In this document: positions 49,521 through 59,400 of the stretch, in pieces
Position numbering within the stretch: the stretch's first letter is position 1
Layout: each line of letters starts with the position of its first letter
NCBI GenBank assembly: GCA_000708835.1
Contig: DF237436.1
Span: forward strand, 4,935 to 68,934
From: Klebsormidium nitens
Taxonomy: Eukaryota > Plantae > Klebsormidiophyceae
Length of the DNA stretch: 64,000 bases
Reading direction: 5' to 3'
Translations under genes and position numbers: made by a program
Notes under the pieces: generated by a model
What the model saw: only the letters and a program-made list of their open reading frames with translations
Database searches by the model: none
What the model was told of the DNA's origin: nothing

Positions 49521-52383
49521 ATGGCAGCAACAGCTGTTTGCTTCCGCCCGCATCAGCTTCAACATTCAGCAACCAAGAGCTTTGCTTCAGAGCGTGATCT
49601 GCTGGCAAATCAACGCACATATTGCTCACAGAGGCAGGGAAAAGCTGCATTCCACTGCGTGATCCATCAATCTATGCCCGCAAGGGCAAAAGCTCATCTC
49701 ATAGCCAAAAGTGCTTGTCGCTTTGACTCGTGTTCCCTCCGCTCTTTGAACAAACGAACAGCTGTTGATAATCCCCAATTAGCAGCTTCTAAATCTAGGA
49801 CCAAGTGTCTGGAGCTGACACGGCGTCGTTGCAGCACATCAATGGCAAGCACAGGGTCGGGGAACGAAGCAGAAGAGGCTGCCAAGTCAAGCAGTCAGCA
49901 GGACATGACCGTGTTGTTCGTCGAGATGGGAGTTGGCTATGACCAGCACGGGTGAGAGTTTGCGTCAGCAGCTTCCCAATGGAAGCAGCATTGTCATAGT
50001 TTTAGGCAACCTGGCTGCGATTGCAGCCAATCGCTGCAGGATAGGATGATGTAGGACGCAGCTTCGGGGTGGTGGTGGCATTGCCATGCACTTTCGCTGC
50101 TGATGCCGCAGACAATGGCGCTGGTGGTATTCAAGTCATTGGTGTCATAAGTGCGACTAGGAAGGTGGCCAAACCACCGCATGGCAAGCCTTCAAAGAGT
50201 GCTCTGTACCACCCATTGAGCTTTTTAACGGCATGATTGAGTCATGATTCATTTGTGCTCTCAATTCCAGGTTGTCTGGGAATTCTACAATTTGGTGCCT
50301 GCTTGATGGCAAGTTACAAGAATTACCTCAAGGTTTGCCATCTTTCGCAGTGCTAATGAGCGACATGTTTGCTACAGTTGCTAACACTCGCATTCGCAGC
50401 TTGACAAACTAAGTGGGCCCCTGATCAATAAGAGCAGGTTTGTGGCAGCACGAGTTTCCGTGCCTTTAGCGAACAGAGGTGTCCGATCTTCAAATGATGT
50501 CACGGCTCTGCTCTGCAGGCAGGATATTACCAGCGCAGCAGTCAAAGCATGCAAGAATGCCATTACGTCAAACTCCATACCTGCATTCCGAACAGGTGGG
50601 ACATGCTGCTACCCTTTGAAAGTTGGCAGACAACATGGATTTCTCAGCAGCAGTTCCATGTCAGATTGCTGACAACTTTCAGTTTGTGGGAGCTTAGACA
50701 ATCACCAACTTGTGTTCGGAGCACCGTTCCTGGACCCCTACTACTTACTGTCTTGTGACGAGCCTGACTGCTGCGCTCTTCCTACACATATCCATTCTAG
50801 AATGATGACAGCCCGCTTCTACTGAGGAAAGCCACAGATCTTGACCACCCTCCGCTGTCTTGAGACCACTTCAAGGACAGTCTGCGGTGCCCTTGGAGAC
50901 TCTGCCCACCAGTTCCTAAGTCTGAGAGGCTACTTGTATGGTACATATCGATAGCAATGCTTGATGTTTCCCAACTGGCTTCAGGCTGCTGTCTTGTTCA
51001 CATAGAAGCAAGAGTAGAGCACAAACCTGACCACAAAGACGTCCAGTTGAACGTTCGGTTACAATCGGCTCGCCGATTGTGCCTTGTGTATATCTCTCAA
51101 CGAACCACCTTTTCATGAAGCGACGTTTAAAAATGCAGTGCAAATGAAGCATCAGTCCGTTTTTGTGTTGTCTCTTGGGGTGGCCACTTCTCTCGTCCCT
51201 CAATCGTTTGGAGCCCGTTCGAACGATTTATGGAGAATCGGAGCGGGAAGCAAGGAATATGAAGAGCCTGCCTGACTCGAAGAGCCATTGTACATTTCTG
51301 ACATTCCTCGGCGCCTTTTCTTTTGGTATAGGTGCGATTCCTGGGGTGAGCTGGGGCGAGATGAAGTTGAAAGTCGTCCTGGGCGTACCTCGGGAGGCCG
51401 CTCACGAGCTGGACATTCCAAAAGTGAAGGCCATCTTTCCATAGTAAGGAGGGATCCTATTCTTGAAATGCAAAGTGCTTCAAATAAGTCCGGCGCTGTG
51501 CTGCTTTACTTCGTGCGTGCATTCAAGCAACCTTGAAACTGTTCGCTTGAACTCGCGGATTGCCGGTACTTTCAAGGTCCGAAGACGATTTTCGATTTGT
51601 CCAGCTCATCGACCACGATTTAAAACGCCGTCCGTTCATAACATCGGGCGATAGGGTATCTTTGATGCTGTCTTGATTACCACAACTTCCTGCCCGCTGT
51701 TTTCTAGGAGAGTCTTGTGGAGAACGTCGCACGAAGGGCAATAGGTTGCTTTTGTATGTTTTTGGGACGCAAGGGACGCAAATGAATCGTTCGCTATACA
51801 AAATGGCTTCCAGAAACAGGCGTTTTGTATGGGCATTATTGCCTATACAAATTAGAGAATGCATATGCAAAACGCTTGATTTCATGTTTTGCATATGCAT
51901 TATTATGCCTATGCATTTTGCCGATGGTTTTGCATAGGCACTTTTCTGTCGTTCGCATTCAAAGGTTTTCCAAAATTGGGCGGGATTGAGTCAATCTGCT
52001 CAACAAGCACTGGGTCTGGACGGCCTAAGCCTAGCTGCGATAAAATATGGAGGCCTTTACCGAGCACGTTTCGCACGACGTCCTCAGTAAATCGTGCTTG
52101 CATTTCCCGACGCTCGCGGATTCAGACCCGATTTTCCGAGAATGGAAAATCGCTTCAGCATGCTAGACCGTAGTGCAATGGCCAACCCGCAACAGACTTT
52201 TTCCTGTTTGCTTTCCTGTTGCCCTCTTGTGACTTTGCCAGCTTTCGTTGCAGTGGCGACATAATTGACGTGGAGGTGAAGGACGGCGGACTAGTGTGCT
52301 CGAGTGGGGTCGCCATCGAGGCCCTCGGGGACAAGAACGATCAGTGCTACATCGTCAATGCGGCCGTTTATGTGGGCTACTAA
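49521..52383 (+). CDS. Lin0512-family conserved protein with a long Ser/Arg/Ala-rich N-terminal extension (putative organellar transit peptide)
   Basis: Phase-consistent exons 49521-49951, 50519-50595, 51332-51443, 52254-52383: VLFVEMGVGYDQHGQDITSAAVKACKNAITSNSIPAF...GGLVCSSGVAIEALGDKNDQCYIVNAAVYVGY*. The start codon is uncertain. Confidence 0.85.
51750..51940. repeat. Array of about 8 alternating-orientation 13-mers TGC(C/A)TAT(A/G)CAAAA forming successive hairpins, in intron 3 of the Lin0512-family gene
   Basis: Units at 51750(rc, partial), 51793, 51823(rc), 51840, 51860, 51887(rc), 51906, 51928(rc). Perfect 16-bp inverted repeat at 51858-51873/51886-51901. Confidence 0.8.
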
Positions 52384-53475
52384 AGTGTCTAGCTGCGCAT
52401 GAAGAGAACTTGTGCAAGCCCTCCTAATACGCTCAAACCCAGCCACCGTTGGAAGGAGGCTGTGAAACTGCTCAAGTCACAAAATTTTGTTCCTCAACTG
52501 CCTGCGGCATGGAAAAGGGGGCTCAGATCTCCCTGATTGCGAGATTCTGAAACCGTCGTAGGATAGTCAGGGGACTGAGCCATAGCCGGACACCATTGAG
52601 AGCTTGATGTCTTTGGACGATTGGCCACAAAGGCTCAACTCCGACCGGCTGTTTGACTTCGCTCTGCGATACACGCCAAGGCAACCAGACAAGCTATTGG
52701 TAGCTGCACTCTCCGTGCAAACGATCGTGGAAAATATTCATCCTCTTGAGCCAGTGAGTACGGCAGTTCAGAACATCGTCTTTCCGTGCAGATCGACCAC
52801 CTACTTCCTTGTTTCACGTACGTCATATGTGCTTATAGAAGCACATAGAGTTATCTTGTCATTTCACTGAGCTGCTTATGTGGAGGCCAGATGTTGCAGC
52901 TATACGGCCGTGGCGCCATAGCTGAGTGCTCGAGCTAGCCACGTTGCTCTTTCCTCGAGCTGGAATTGCACAAAAGTGACATGGGTGGATGGTGGCCAGC
53001 TGTATGCGGGCGCCCATGACTCTTGGACTAGGATATCATCAGCCGCAAGCATCCAAAAATTCAAACAGTACCCTGGTTACCAGGAATCGTATGGACTTCT
53101 GCAACCATGATTTCAGAGACCCGACTGCCATCACCACTACATGCCAAATCCTACAGTCACATGCAATGCATGCTTGAATTGACTTTGATCATGACAGGCA
53201 TAACCTGCATGCCAGAATTAAGCGGCGTGTGCAGTAAGAGTGACTGAACACGCAAGAGCAGCCGTCTACACGTAATTGGCATTGTCACTAAAAATTGGCA
53301 TGAAGGCCCATATGGACACAAAGTGTCCCTCGTGTGCGCGTCACACAAGGTGTGCGAGGTGTCAGCTCCTTGAGCTCGACTGTTCTATTGCGGATGTCTA
53401 CAAGGCCGACTCACCGTCGTTTCCCCGCCTTTCAAACAGGACTCGGCGGGGCAACAAAGTGTCAAACTGGGAAGC

Positions 53476-54754
53476 CTAATAGAGCGTGCTATTCCAAGGA
53501 ACTTGATAACCTCTCGGGTACGATGTGTAGATCTTGGGATAAGCTGGCCAGACGTCCTTCACAAACGGCCCATAGAAAGTCTTTGGGAGCACTGCAAAAC
53601 GACGCAGCCGGCAAGGTGAGCAGCTAGAGCAAGGTTGGATGGGGATTAGAAACGCATCACTTTCCTGCAGCTAAAAGACACACCTCACGCAAGGACTTGC
53701 CTGCCATGACGAGAACAAGCTAGGAAGGAGTTCAGCCCTCGCTGCGCGCACAACTCAGATGAAGTCAGAAGAGCGCAAGCAGAGTAAGAAAGTCGTCTTT
53801 GAAACAGCGTTCATATTCATTTAACGCCTGCACTTACCCAAGTACCGATCGTCTCGCACTTCGAGAGCAACTTGGAGGAGGCCCAAGAAATAGAGTAAGA
53901 AGCCACTGTACAGGACGCAGAAGACGAGCAGAATGTAGCCTGCAAAGTCGTGAGAAGAGATGAGTAAAGCCCCTAGGAGGGTTGATGAATGCTGTCACGA
54001 TTGGGTGTGTTTCAGCTGTGGGCTCAGTTTCAACGAGCTGTGAATGGGCATACTCTGCTTACGAGGGCGCACCCACCTTTCAGCATTGGTTGACAGGAGA
54101 ATTTCCTAAGTCATTGTGAGCACCGGCGCTACTGCAAGCTTCCAGCTCACTTTCAAAAGCAGGAAGGAGACCACCTTCTCACCCCAGTTCCGGTAGGTGA
54201 TGCCAAAGACCCCGGGGAACCGCTTCTTGATGATGCGCATGGACGGGGATCGGCCATAGTTTCTCCGAGCCGAGGGGCTCCGAGTCTGAGGGAAAGCAAA
54301 AGCAGGACCTCAGCAAAAGAGACTTCTTTGGCAGCTCAAACCTCAAAGTCCCAAACTTAGGCTGCTGATCCTGCTTAAGAACAACCAAAATACTTGCTTT
54401 TTCGACTTTTGATGAACTAACTTCTTGACTTCAGCTTTCACACCCGCAGCACATCAGTGCTTCACCCATGTACCTAGGGGATGCTTGTACATGCCAGATG
54501 TTTGAGATCTGTGCTGCACAGGTCGGCCCCGGCATTTTGGGCCGGGCGAAACTCCGTCCTAGCTATGACACACACTGGCAACTCAAGGCTGTGCAAAGGC
54601 TGCCCAGCAACCGGTGCATAGAGTAATCAGGAATGCTCTCAGTCATGGGAAAGGATGACAGCAGCACTCTAAGAGGTGACGACCAAGGGTTGTTGACCTT
54701 TCTCACCAATTCAATGTTGGAATCGATGGCGACCCTGGCCGCAGGCGAGGCCAT
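53476..54754 (-). CDS. Small type II membrane protein (122 aa) resembling the Na+/K+-ATPase beta-subunit N-terminus/TM
   Basis: Four exons with canonical GT-AG sites and consistent phases: 54754-54707, 54285-54183, 53939-53838, 53591-53476. Product MASPAARVAIDSNIELTRSPSARRNYGRSPSMRIIKKRFPGVFGITYRNWGYILLVFCVLYSGFLLYFLGLLQVALEVRDDRYLVLPKTFYGPFVKDVWPAYPKIYTSYPRGYQVPWNSTLY*. The gene model is better supported than the family assignment. Confidence 0.65.
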
Positions 54755-54945
54755 GGCTTGCTCTGCCCACTGCCCTCCTCCGGCCCCTCAAATGCAGGTC
54801 ACTCTGCGGCAAGGCTAGTACATTCAGCAATAAGAGCCCGCTGGCACTGCTGCCCCTCCCAGCAGATGAGACAGGAACTCCCAAGAACGCTCTTGGCGGT
54901 CCTGCACACCTGAAAAGTTCTTCTTGGACCGCTGTCCTGCCTCCC

Positions 54946-54952
54946 GTTTATA
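54946..54952 (-). promoter_or_regulatory. Putative TATA box of the beta-subunit-like gene
   Basis: TATAAAC on the minus strand about 190 nt upstream of the ATG at 54754. Confidence 0.5.
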
Positions 54953-56448
54953 ACTAGGCAACTGGGTAGGATCCTGCAACCCTTCAGGCGCAAGGGCAGA
55001 CTGAGGCACTGCGGATCCAAGAGCACTCTACTACCTAATAGAATTTCGACCAGACTCTCACACCTGCATTCATACCACAGGTCCTAGTCATGTCCATTCA
55101 GACATTAGTCCATACTGTATCTATAATCTAGTGTGAATTGTTGCGTGAGGATTTTTACGGTGTGTCAATGACATCGTGACTGAGGCCCAGGGTGCGTTCT
55201 GAACCGGCCGGCGGCGGCCGATGGAAACGCTTACCAACCTCAGTGCGCGCGCGGGCTTTATTTATCGACGGTGCGAAATTTTATTAACTTGAGATCGGAC
55301 GGTATGAATTGGCTTTCAAAGTTCTCGTCTACATTGTACCAACGGTGCTGATGATGCTGATGCTACCGGTATCTAAGTGGTATTAGCCTATAGTACCCTG
55401 AGGTCACGCCACGCACGCGAGCGAGCTGAGCCTGAACTTCGTGTGTACCGACAACCTTTCTCATTGCAACTAAACTATACCTTAGGGGGAGTCCACCTCG
55501 CGAGCTTCTGAAATGTTCCTTCGGCATCTCCGTAACAGGATTTTGGAGTCAGTACTTTTATGCAAGCCGCGCATGGCGATGCGCCATGCGGCTGAATTGA
55601 AAGAAGGGCAGAAAGAGTGTATTGCTCTCGCAGTTGTTCGCCCCAAGTCGTCCTAGTCGTGTGCAAAACACGTGCGCAGGCGGTATATCTCCATCAGGTG
55701 CGATTAGATGGGATAGAAGGAATGCATGCCCGCGAATTTGTGTTTGACGAATCCGCCATGTGGAGTGGGAAGAGTATCTGAGTCTCCAGCACCGTCAGCT
55801 GCATTGCGGAAATTGTACAAATACATCAGCCCTCGGAGCTAATTCCAAAGTTGCTCATGCATGCTCCGTTCGCAAACTCGCTGCAACAGCACATGGCACT
55901 AACATCGTGAGCTCTATCAAGTAAGATTGCCCGCACGCCGGAGCCGTATATTGATGTTCCGAATTAAGCATGTCGATCTGATCTTGGATCCTTTTGCTCA
56001 ACAGGCTTTGTTTACTATCTTGAATATTTGATTGTTGTAATTTGATTGTACAATACATATTGCGTTTGAAACCAATGAGAAAGGAAGGGCTCTTTGGGGG
56101 GCCTTGCTGGTCAACTCTAGCTGACCTGATCTTACGAAAGCGGAATGTCAGATTTGGATCAAACATCCACCGGCGGTGTCCTCACACAGATATGAGTCTC
56201 TCCATCCAATATGATTAGTCAGTGCCGCTTTGGCCCCTCATCATGGTTCCAGGCTCCCGGCTGCCCGGGGCTTTGTGACTCGGATCGCTTTGACGTTAGA
56301 TGCCGTATGAGCTTAGCTCGCTGGTTTGGAGATGTTGAGATGTGGCTTCACATGCGACGCCCTGACACACAGCAACGCATGTGCATGCCAACCTTCGTCA
56401 TACACGCGTGGGGTTTGCAGCTTGTCAACTCGAAATGATTCAACCATC

Positions 56449-59400
56449 TTACTTGGCTCTCCGACGAAACAAAAACTTTATCTCCCCGTTCTGCAGCCTC
56501 TGGCCCGAGATCACAAAACGAGCACCCTGCACCAGCATCCGCTGCATGATTCTCGCGATGTTGTGTGCGTCATCCAGCCCGACGTGGTGCGTACCCCACA
56601 GCGGAAGTTGGAGGTCCCGCAGCATCGGCCGCATGCCGCTTGCCTGCATGAAGATAATTCAACGAAGTCGGTATTCAGAAGGGACTTCAAAAGCAAGCGG
56701 GAAAACTACGCGACAACGTCGGCGTTTAGTGAAGACTCCGGAAGCAAGCAGGAGAACCACGCTACGACTACGGCGCTGCGAGGTACGAAGGGTACGAAAG
56801 AGGTCGAAGCTTGAAATCAAGGACAATAATTGCTGTGACTTCGCGTCGTCAGCCGACGTACATATGCCGAGAATCCGCTTCCAAAATAGGGCTGTAGCCC
56901 GGTGCTTGATGTGTGAAAGGTTGCGGCGACGAGCTCTTTCACGGTTGAATCTGAAGACTGTAAGGACTCGTGCCGAAAAAACAACTTTGAGAAACCAGCA
57001 CGAGGGTGTGCCTCCGAATCGGGTATGGGCTCGGGGACCAAACCTGAGAACGGATGGAGACTCACGTTTCGTCTGTAGTGGTTGACGTAGATGTCTTTGA
57101 TGTTTATCCACTCATTAAAGTAAGGAGGTATGCCGATCTCCGAAGAAACGCACTGCTCCGCGATCTTGGTCTTGATGTCCCAATTACCACTGCAAGAGGA
57201 GAGAGCAGCATTGTGTCAATCGACTATACGTAAGGCGGGTAAAGTGCCATTTACGCGAAGAACGTCCGAAGATTGGAACAGGAACAAGCTCGTGGAATCG
57301 ATGGTTTGCGCTTGACCAGGCGGGATCGCAGGATCAAGTGAACACTCAGGGCCCGTCGTCAATTCAGCATATCAACCGAAAACGGTTCAAAATCAGGCCA
57401 CGAAATGCAAAAGCGTACCAAGCCCTGGATCCACCGAGGAGCTGCAGAGAGAAAACATTCTTGTCGCACAGACAGGCTTGGGGACCTGGGTCAAACTCAC
57501 CAAGTAACAAACGCTGCATTTTTGACTCACCAAGTAACAAACGCTGCATTTTGCAGCTTGCCTGACGTCGAGGCCGCTTCGTTCGCCGCCTCGGGTCCCT
57601 GGTCTTTGTCTGAAGTTGCCGTGCTGCCGTCATTCTCTGCCCCCGACGTTTGCTGTGCGCTCTCGTTCGTCGGCGGCCTCCACAGGCCGTGCCCCTCTAG
57701 CCACACCTCGAACTCGTCCAGGACTTGGGTGAACGGGATGGCGGTGTCAAACCAAACGCTGCAAGCAGGGCGCTGCACGTGAGAACAAATGCGAGCCAGG
57801 AGCTAGAGAGAGTCAAAGATCGCCCGGTCGTTTAGTTGAAACATCATGGGGATTCGTTACTGAGGAACGCCGTGGGCGTTGCAGGCAGAAGCCTACCTAA
57901 AGGCAGCCCTCACGCACGCACAGAAAATGAAAAGCCCCAGCAAATTGGAGTCTCGAGAGACTCACCGGTGAATGCCCATCAGGCCGTATTTGCCCTTCAC
58001 GTATTGTGTAATGTACTCATCGGACATTTTGACGGGGCAAACAAATCTGCAAGAAAGGCACAGAGAAAAGTAGGTTCACTAGCACTTCAAGGAGGACCGG
58101 GATCCCCTAGCCAAAGGTGACGAAGATTCAAGCACTGTAACATGGGCTTGCACACCCTGCGAGGGAGTATGCAGGCTGGCCAGACGCCTGCCTGGCCGTT
58201 TAAGTATCCAGTGCTTTGCAGCGACATTCCTTCAGAAACAACAACCCCAAATTGGCAACATGAAGAAATGATGAGTAACCAAGTATTCGCTTCGGCTTCT
58301 ACCTATGAAAGCGGTCCAGCACTTTGAGAGTCTTGGGGTCGAGCAAGACGACTGGAAACTCCAGGATCTCGACGCGCCCCTCCAGGTCCAGGATGAGGTA
58401 CTTGTCAAACGGCTGGGGCCGCACCCGCCGCCAATCGGCAGGCCGCACTGGCAGCTCTGGATACTTGTGGGCATGTTGGTCCGTGTGGTTTGCATTCCAC
58501 CCCTGGCACGAGCAACAGCAGTCGCCGCCTCAGCTAGTATCTATATGCTAGACACTTAGGGGACTCTTGATGATGAGGACTCTCAGCCCCATGACCACAA
58601 AAATAAGAAGTGAGAGGCTGGAGGTTGTACGGCGGCACACAGTTGGCTGTTTGGTGAAACACTCCCCACTGACGAGAATGGAATGTTGAGGGGCTTCTTT
58701 GCAGACGAGATAGATGACTCTAGGCCTATGACTCAGCAATAAGGAGTCTCGAAGATTCCCAAGAAGGCTTTGATTGGCAGGGGTACGGCAGAATGAGGTG
58801 TGGGGTGTTCCTGACTGTAACTGATCTGCGGGGGAGGACTCAATGTCTCACCGACACAGAGCAGGAGCTTTGAGCTCGACAGACAGTAGATTTACAAAGC
58901 AGGAAAAAGCTGCCAAAGACGGGGGCCCAGTACTCGTTCAGGTGCACCAAATGGCACTGAGTCAGTGGCTGTTTTCAAGCCGCTCTCAGAATGTGATACA
59001 ATAGGTGCACCACTTGCCTGATCGCATTTTCCCTGGGTCCAGTAGTAACAAAGGCGTTTTGTCCCCACTTTGGGTGCCACCGCCTCAACTGCTGCTTCCC
59101 TCACGGAATCCACTGGTGCAGTCTGCTTATGCCCACCGCTTGTTGATGGGGCCCCGGACGAGTCGCTCTCGTGCTCCCCCATCGTCATTCCCACTGACAC
59201 ACTGTCCCTCCCAGATGTATTAGCAGGTTCTTGGGGCGCCTGAATTGCGTCCCAGTTGCTAAGTCTGAGGGAATCTGATGTTGATTGGAATTTGCTGGCA
59301 AGGGGCGGATCATCACTAGCAACCGCTTGAGACCCAAGGCCTGCGCAGACGGTTACAAAACCTTTCGGAAAGATAGTTTCATTACTAGGATGGTTGCGGT

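Follow-up and report, generated by a model that had tools for sequence, protein, structure and literature searches.

A weakly transcribed gene of Klebsormidium nitens encodes a predicted one-helix protein that resembles the membrane anchor of Na,K-ATPase beta subunits

Gene Structure and Genomic Surroundings

KFL_004870090 is a four-exon gene on the minus strand of contig DF237436.1 of Klebsormidium nitens (GCA_000708835.1), which extends from 54754 to 53476 and encodes a protein of 122 amino acids. All coordinates are positions in a 64,000-nt window of this contig, which is the whole stretch of DNA that was analyzed. The start codon ATG lies at 54754 and the stop codon TAG at 53478-53476. An earlier sequence-only reading had described a frame of four exons and 122 amino acids, and the translation of the present model is letter-identical to the public record GAQ89104.1 (KFL_004870090, A0A1Y1IDS1), a 122-amino-acid "hypothetical protein" of Klebsormidium nitens. 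The gene is thus already in the public annotation, yet it is unstudied; that the list of open reading frames had missed it, as the same reading stated, was borne out. The upstream TATA box that had been claimed is present as TATAAA (Table 1). The 5' untranslated region, which one contig of run X3 extends to 54904, contains a two-codon upstream open reading frame (ATG TAC TAG) at 54823-54815 (-), 61 nt before the start codon. Exon 2 encodes a basic stretch, which is predicted to be cytoplasmic, together with the motif G-I-T-Y-R-N-W, and exon 3 encodes the membrane helix (residues 51-76) followed by E-V-R-D-D-R-Y-L.

Table 1. Features of the KFL_004870090 locus in the 64,000-nt window.
Feature	Position	Strand	Evidence or remark
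TATAAA box	54947..54952	-	43 nt upstream of the outermost RNA contig end (54904, minimum 5' extent)
5' UTR, minimum extent	54755..54904	-	run X3 contig covering 54707-54904, spliced to exon 2
Exon 1 coding part, residues 1-16	54707..54754	-	joint 54285/54707 in 3 runs
Intron 1, 421 nt, phase 0, GT..AG	54286..54706	-	spliced out in X2, X3 and X4 contigs
Exon 2, residues 17-50 and first base of codon 51	54183..54285	-	whole length under spliced contigs
Intron 2, 243 nt, phase 1, GT-AG, splits codon G51 directly after W50	53940..54182	-	joint 53939/54183 in X2 and X4
Exon 3, 102 nt, phase-1 intron on each side	53838..53939	-	RNA cover only 53883-53938
Intron 3, 246 nt, phase 1, GTAAGT..CAG	53592..53837	-	predicted and used by public model GAQ89104.1; no contig cover
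Exon 4 coding part, residue 85 (split codon) to 122 with TAG stop	53476..53591	-	translation; no RNA contig cover
Beta-subunit-like segment, residues 42-78	53857..54210 (54210-54183 and 53939-53857, broken by intron 2)	-	same register in MAFFT, BLASTP, hmmsearch and hhalign
GGTGAGT donor-like site, 61 nt past the stop	53409..53415	-	sequence; no RNA contig there

The upstream neighbor, on the same strand, is a gene with a faint RNase_T match. The downstream neighbor converges on KFL_004870090 and is an intron-bearing gene at 49842-52801 (+) that encodes a 142-residue member of Lin0512_fam (PF09585), a family that is mainly bacterial. Only 675 nt separate the stop codon of KFL_004870090 from the 3' end of this neighbor's transcript (52801), and therefore no space is left for further ectodomain exons. 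The sequence-only reading had pointed to a strong donor 61 nt after the stop as a possible mark of a longer form. The donor is present, as GGTGAGT, and the longer form was rejected, because no RNA was found there and the neighboring transcript ends so close. A motif scan found no P-type ATPase motif in the 64-kb window, tblastn found no paralogue of KFL_004870090 in it, where the DNA of the locus is unique, and no Rfam family was found over 52800-56100.

Transcript Evidence

RNA evidence was taken from the contigs of four small runs (X1-X4) of one study, which were compared over 51800-56800. The sequence-only reading had asked for transcripts along the exon chain, and this was confirmed in part: the splicing of intron 1 was seen in three runs and that of intron 2 in two, whereas intron 3 and exon 4 are without a covering contig in the runs of this study, and only the first 56 bases of exon 3 lie under RNA contigs. 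These spliced contigs and its coding-type base composition show KFL_004870090 to be a real gene. The GC content is 0.71 at third codon positions (GC3), 0.44-0.49 at the first and second positions and 0.50 in the introns.

The expression level is low. The contig depth of KFL_004870090 is about 2.3, versus 50-110 for the neighbors on either side; the Lin0512_fam neighbor, at about 85-115, is roughly 40 times deeper. An unspliced contig of X1 (54276-54478) runs from exon 2 into intron 1, and it may represent precursor RNA, intron retention or an overlapping transcript; the contigs give no strand. Such a low depth, the unspliced contig, and a last exon without RNA support would suit a young or decaying open reading frame that has no function, that is, a weakly transcribed and spliced locus with a frame that happens to hold a hydrophobic stretch. 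The same RNA also argues against it, with two of three canonical introns seen spliced across three runs, and so do the in-frame GC3, the favorable context of the start codon and the one well-defined helix, whose flanking charges follow the positive-inside rule. A functionless frame is therefore considered improbable.

Protein Architecture

The protein has a single hydrophobic helix at residues 51-76, in which the best 19-residue hydropathy window is 53-71. The 15 residues that precede the helix have a net charge of +4 and the 15 that follow it a net charge of 0, and the N-terminus is therefore predicted to be cytosolic. Hydropathy and charge thus fit a single-pass protein with the N-terminus inside, which agrees, as a prediction, with the type II membrane protein that had been proposed. 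The tail after the helix has 46 residues with no further domain and carries an N-S-T sequon at residues 118-120 (53485-53493). The short luminal part with one sequon and without the beta ectodomain, as stated in the sequence-only reading, was accordingly found. The tail also carries two adjoining x-Y-P-[KR]-x-Y units, at residues 101-106 and 108-113 (53506-53544, -). These units sit in a stretch in which Tyr, Pro and Trp make up 13 of 37 residues, and they match no family. The ESM Atlas model of the protein has a pLDDT of 0.63 and a pTM of 0.29 with no fold match above TM 0.5; as far as this model goes, no fold is available for comparison.

Searches for Relatives

Family and homology searches returned no relatives. 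At E<=10, neither the single exons nor the whole protein matched a Pfam family, and the whole protein matched nothing in NCBIfam. Searches of PDB with the single exons were empty as well, and a phmmer search of the whole protein against PDB gave no beta chain at E<=10. The sole PDB matches found, to a stretch of Prp8 (E 0.46) and to MJ1247 (E 1.5), were taken as chance. A HMMER search with exon 3 against 1.84 billion representatives, which can reach close kin, returned the protein itself only, and a word search with the protein gave the same result. A metagenome scan yielded 407 pattern matches, none of which was confirmed as a relative. The protein cluster of KFL_004870090 has one member.

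KFL_004870090 is thus apparently species restricted. The single-member cluster and the failure of these searches to find relatives would also fit the functionless frame considered above; that no relatives appeared carries little weight, since only close kin were within reach of the searches. The sequence-only reading had looked to a PF00287 match and to homologues conserving G-x-T-x3-W/Y/Q-V. Neither appeared: profiles built for this purpose, described below, reached 10-11 bits only, and no homologue at all was found in searches reaching close kin.

Likeness to the Na,K-ATPase Beta Anchor

The likeness to the beta subunit was first put forward from a 35-residue segment quoted for human ATP1B1. 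The quoted segment is exact and corresponds to residues 24-58 of PDB chains such as 7e1z_B. The ungapped identity of 12 in 35 was recomputed and is correct. MAFFT, BLASTP, HMMER and hhalign all chose one register, which is anchored on the Trp. The motif that had been proposed stands in part, since the family-invariant G, T and W and the helix Tyr are matched, whereas F-x-G-x2-Q-V-x-L is specific to beta-1 and is not conserved in the family. Taken alone, the human beta-1 35-mer scores 5.6 bits against KFL_004870090 after a bias correction of 6.2 bits, a score that 3% of segment-wise shuffles reach.

Profiles were built from beta N-terminal fragments and 80 metagenome loci. The fragments had been fetched with an alignment of KFL_004870090 residues 33-122 and the 35-mer, and they match by construction, so that their retrieval is not evidence. 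Against a profile of 34 vertebrate beta N-termini, KFL_004870090 scores 10.3 bits, which corresponds to an E-value of 4.1 at PDB size. The same profile finds every beta chain in PDB at <=5e-13 and gives 11.8 bits to the unrelated TRPC3 and 9.3 bits to PetL. Adding 56 invertebrate sequences raised the score only to 11.1 bits (a metazoan profile of 94 sequences), and an invertebrate-only profile gave 8.8 bits. Among the beta-like N-termini, a divergent group in marine metatranscriptome contigs (L053, L057, L082) has a helix that contains I-Q-[IL]-M and is followed by K-P-K-L-x-T-R-L-N-I-P-G, unlike vertebrate and arthropod-type sequences.

Composition does not account for these scores. When the compositions of head, helix and tail were kept, 40-76 of 20000 segment-wise shuffles (0.2-0.4%) reached the profile score, and the hhalign score was reached by 1 of 320 shuffles. 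The hhalign comparison with beta gave a probability of 48.5% and a P-value of 1.8e-4 over 39 columns, and composition-adjusted BLASTP gave an E-value of 4e-4 as a single comparison. The likeness to the beta anchor is too specific to be put down to composition. Across a whole proteome, about 0.2-0.4 matches of this strength would be expected by chance, and a look-alike of about 11 bits somewhere in the proteome is unsurprising in itself.

Conservation within the family was read from the 94 metazoan sequences, in which 12 columns are conserved at >=90% (G-R-T-x-x-S-W-x-K-I-x-x-F-Y ... L ... T ... P ... G). KFL_004870090 keeps four of these 12 near-invariant columns (G44, T46, W50, I53) and has lost R, S, F, Y (which is replaced by Phe), L, T, P and G.

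In a feature search of the ESM Atlas, which covers 7.7 million clusters, 28 of the 30 nearest clusters were PF00287. The top neighbor had a cosine of 0.94 and shared 218 of 256 features, and by the calibration of the Atlas tool itself, a first match of this kind is about a 1% event by chance. When PF00287 was excluded, this search gave no usable match. The alignment, profile and language-model scores are not independent, because all of them rest on the same 37 residues. Together, these results indicate a genuine resemblance of this stretch to the beta-subunit anchor, specific and reproducible, yet too weak as a sequence comparison to prove kinship.

One explanation of this resemblance is common descent. 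KFL_004870090 may be a very remote PF00287 relative without an ectodomain, in which the juxtamembrane motif, the helix and an ancestral phase-1 intron after the Trp were kept. The shared Trp-anchored register, the 12 identities in 35 with their family-invariant G, T, W and I and the helix Tyr, the shuffle P-values of 0.002-0.004, the hhalign and BLASTP values and the language-model neighborhood argue for this explanation, as does the predicted N-in topology, which matches that of beta. It is weakened by the lack of a significant profile match, as unrelated PDB proteins score equally high, by the loss of eight of 12 near-invariant columns, by the small gain from the broader family profile, and by the common origin of all these scores in 37 residues. 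Descent from beta is a possible reading that falls somewhat short of an even chance.

Intron Position Shared with Vertebrate Beta Genes

Gene structure gave an observation that is independent of the sequence scores. Intron 2 of KFL_004870090 splits TGG G/GC, that is, the codon after the aligned Trp, in phase 1. The structures of beta genes were read from teleost loci and metagenome loci (L055 appears rodent-like). Beta fragments that had been obtained as read-through open reading frames all start right after the Trp. In teleost beta-1 (L001:906-1103), the acceptor falls behind the first base of the codon that follows the Trp, with a phase-1 donor 43 codons further on, and teleost beta-2 (L002:501-7874) has the same structure, with TGG G/GT. 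In addition, 11 genomic metagenome loci of beta-1, beta-2 and beta-3-like type have the same 129-nt exon between phase-1 introns; loci with this helix exon include L008, L010, L014, L016, L020, L021, L054, L070, L073 and L074. In the vertebrate beta-1, -2 and -3-like loci that were read, the helix exon is always 129 nt long and the second intron lies in the Gly codon after P-P or T-P. The vertebrate beta helix exon is a symmetrical, shuffling-type exon.

In both KFL_004870090 and beta, the helix exon thus lies between phase-1 introns, with a length of 102 nt in the former and 129 nt in the latter. The second intron does not coincide; it is in phase 1 in both, at 34 codons after the first in KFL_004870090 and at 43 codons in beta. 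The shared intron was seen only in vertebrate genes and is absent from the beta genes of two invertebrate-type genomic contigs (L071:1501-1671 on the 54-kb contig Ga0209372_1000147, and L080:1501-1665 on the 39-kb contig Ga0058701_10000301). In these two, the N-terminus, the helix and the N-P-G stretch lie in one unbroken frame. The age of the intron within the beta family is uncertain because these two contigs do not have it. The first intron and the exon symmetry speak for common descent, while the displaced second intron and the two contigs that lack the first speak against it.

For a gene with three introns over 366 coding bases, the chance that one of them falls exactly on a given site is about 1%. 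Phase-1 introns are in excess near signal and anchor sequences, and when this is allowed for, the chance is perhaps 2-3%; the coincidence was noticed after the fact. Real kinship becomes considerably more likely in view of the intron coincidence and of a language-model neighborhood that is almost purely PF00287. For a random frame, a specific likeness to beta combined with this coincidence would be an odd accident, which further disfavors a functionless open reading frame.

Comparison with Known Systems

The closest comparison is with the beta subunits of Na,K- and H,K-ATPases (PF00287; ATP1B1-3, ATP4B and Nervana-type). Both KFL_004870090, by prediction, and beta are single-pass proteins with the N-terminus inside and a short basic cytoplasmic head. 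Both carry G-x-T-x3-W just ahead of the helix, which begins with I-L-L and has a Tyr at one third of its length. The differences are considerable. The tail of KFL_004870090 has 46 residues, whereas the beta ectodomain has about 230 residues, is glycosylated and contains three disulfides. Beta subunits assemble obligately with a P2C alpha subunit, their helix packing on M7/M10 and their ectodomain on the M7-M8 loop. The invariant Arg (G-R-T), the Ser (S-W), the F-Y at the helix start and the post-helix P-x-[YW]-Q-D-R...G of beta are missing in KFL_004870090, and its score lies below every PF00287 threshold. To our knowledge, beta subunits are known only from animals and are regarded as an animal invention, whereas KFL_004870090 comes from a streptophyte alga, which gives descent from beta a low prior. 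The missing ectodomain and the very low expression also weigh against it.

Small pump regulators, namely the FXYD proteins of the Na,K-ATPase and the regulins of SERCA, phospholamban and sarcolipin, are like KFL_004870090 in being small and in having a membrane helix as the one part with an evident function. FXYD proteins have a type I (N-out) topology and an F-X-Y-D motif, and regulins are tail-anchored and almost lack a luminal part. KFL_004870090 differs from the former in its predicted N-in orientation and in having no F-x-Y-D and no Pfam match, and from the latter in that its helix is not C-terminal, as 46 residues follow it. Searches of Pfam and PDB found no sequence similarity to FXYD proteins or regulins. 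These one-helix regulators may serve as a functional analogy for a helix-only accessory protein, whether or not KFL_004870090 is a remote beta relative.

A third comparison concerns the pumps of algae. P2C pumps are present in algae, where no beta is known for them (PMC3355532, PMC7911474), a point in favor of a remote beta; a beta was looked for in green algae and not found (PMC7911474). The beta-like M7-M8 insert of algal P2C pumps has been proposed as a substitute for the classical beta in green and red algae (PMC3355532, PMC7911474). This insert belongs to the alpha chain and would, as proposed, stand in for the ectodomain, whereas KFL_004870090 is a separate gene that resembles the membrane anchor only; both remain proposals. 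The loss of P2C pumps that has been proposed for streptophytes (PMC3355532) and the still hypothetical nature of an alpha partner in K. nitens disfavor a remote beta. A literature search on P2C or Na-ATPases in Klebsormidium found nothing informative.

Interpretation and Significance

The beta-like reading that started this analysis stands in part: the anchor likeness is reproducible and specific, and it comes without a significant profile match and without homologues in searches that reach close kin. The beta-subunit reading is therefore neither proven nor dismissed. The account given the most weight, at about even confidence, is that KFL_004870090 is a real, weakly transcribed and apparently species-restricted one-helix protein that is not demonstrably a member of the Na,K-ATPase beta family. 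According to this account, helix 51-76 would act as a signal-anchor, the basic N-terminal 50 residues would stay in the cytosol, and the Tyr/Pro/Trp-rich tail with its one sequon would lie in the ER lumen or outside the cell. Given its size and build, the protein would most plausibly be a one-helix accessory of a larger membrane protein, and the 37-residue likeness to the beta anchor would be a matter of chance or convergence.

If KFL_004870090 is instead a remote beta, its helix would bind M7/M10 of an algal P2-type cation pump as a minimal stabilizer or regulator, without the jobs that depend on the ectodomain. The sequence-only reading had suggested a chaperone or regulator of an algal P-type pump, a role that is conjectural here. 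A broader proposal, put forward tentatively and with slightly less confidence than descent itself, is a "proto-beta", in which the anchor module with its phase-1 intron would be older than the animals and would survive, without an ectodomain, in a streptophyte alga, where it would serve a P2-type cation pump as a one-helix partner.

The folding and trafficking of algal Na/K-type pumps without beta is an open question (PMC3355532, PMC7911474). If KFL_004870090 is not a relative, it would serve as a calibration case, in which anchor likeness, language-model neighborhood and an intron agree while profile statistics stay at noise level. If it is a true relative, it would be the first beta-type anchor outside animals, it would offer algal pumps a candidate partner that is small and easy to test, and the anchor and the ectodomain would have separate histories. 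If the proto-beta proposal is true, the origin of beta would move back before the split of the plant and animal lineages.
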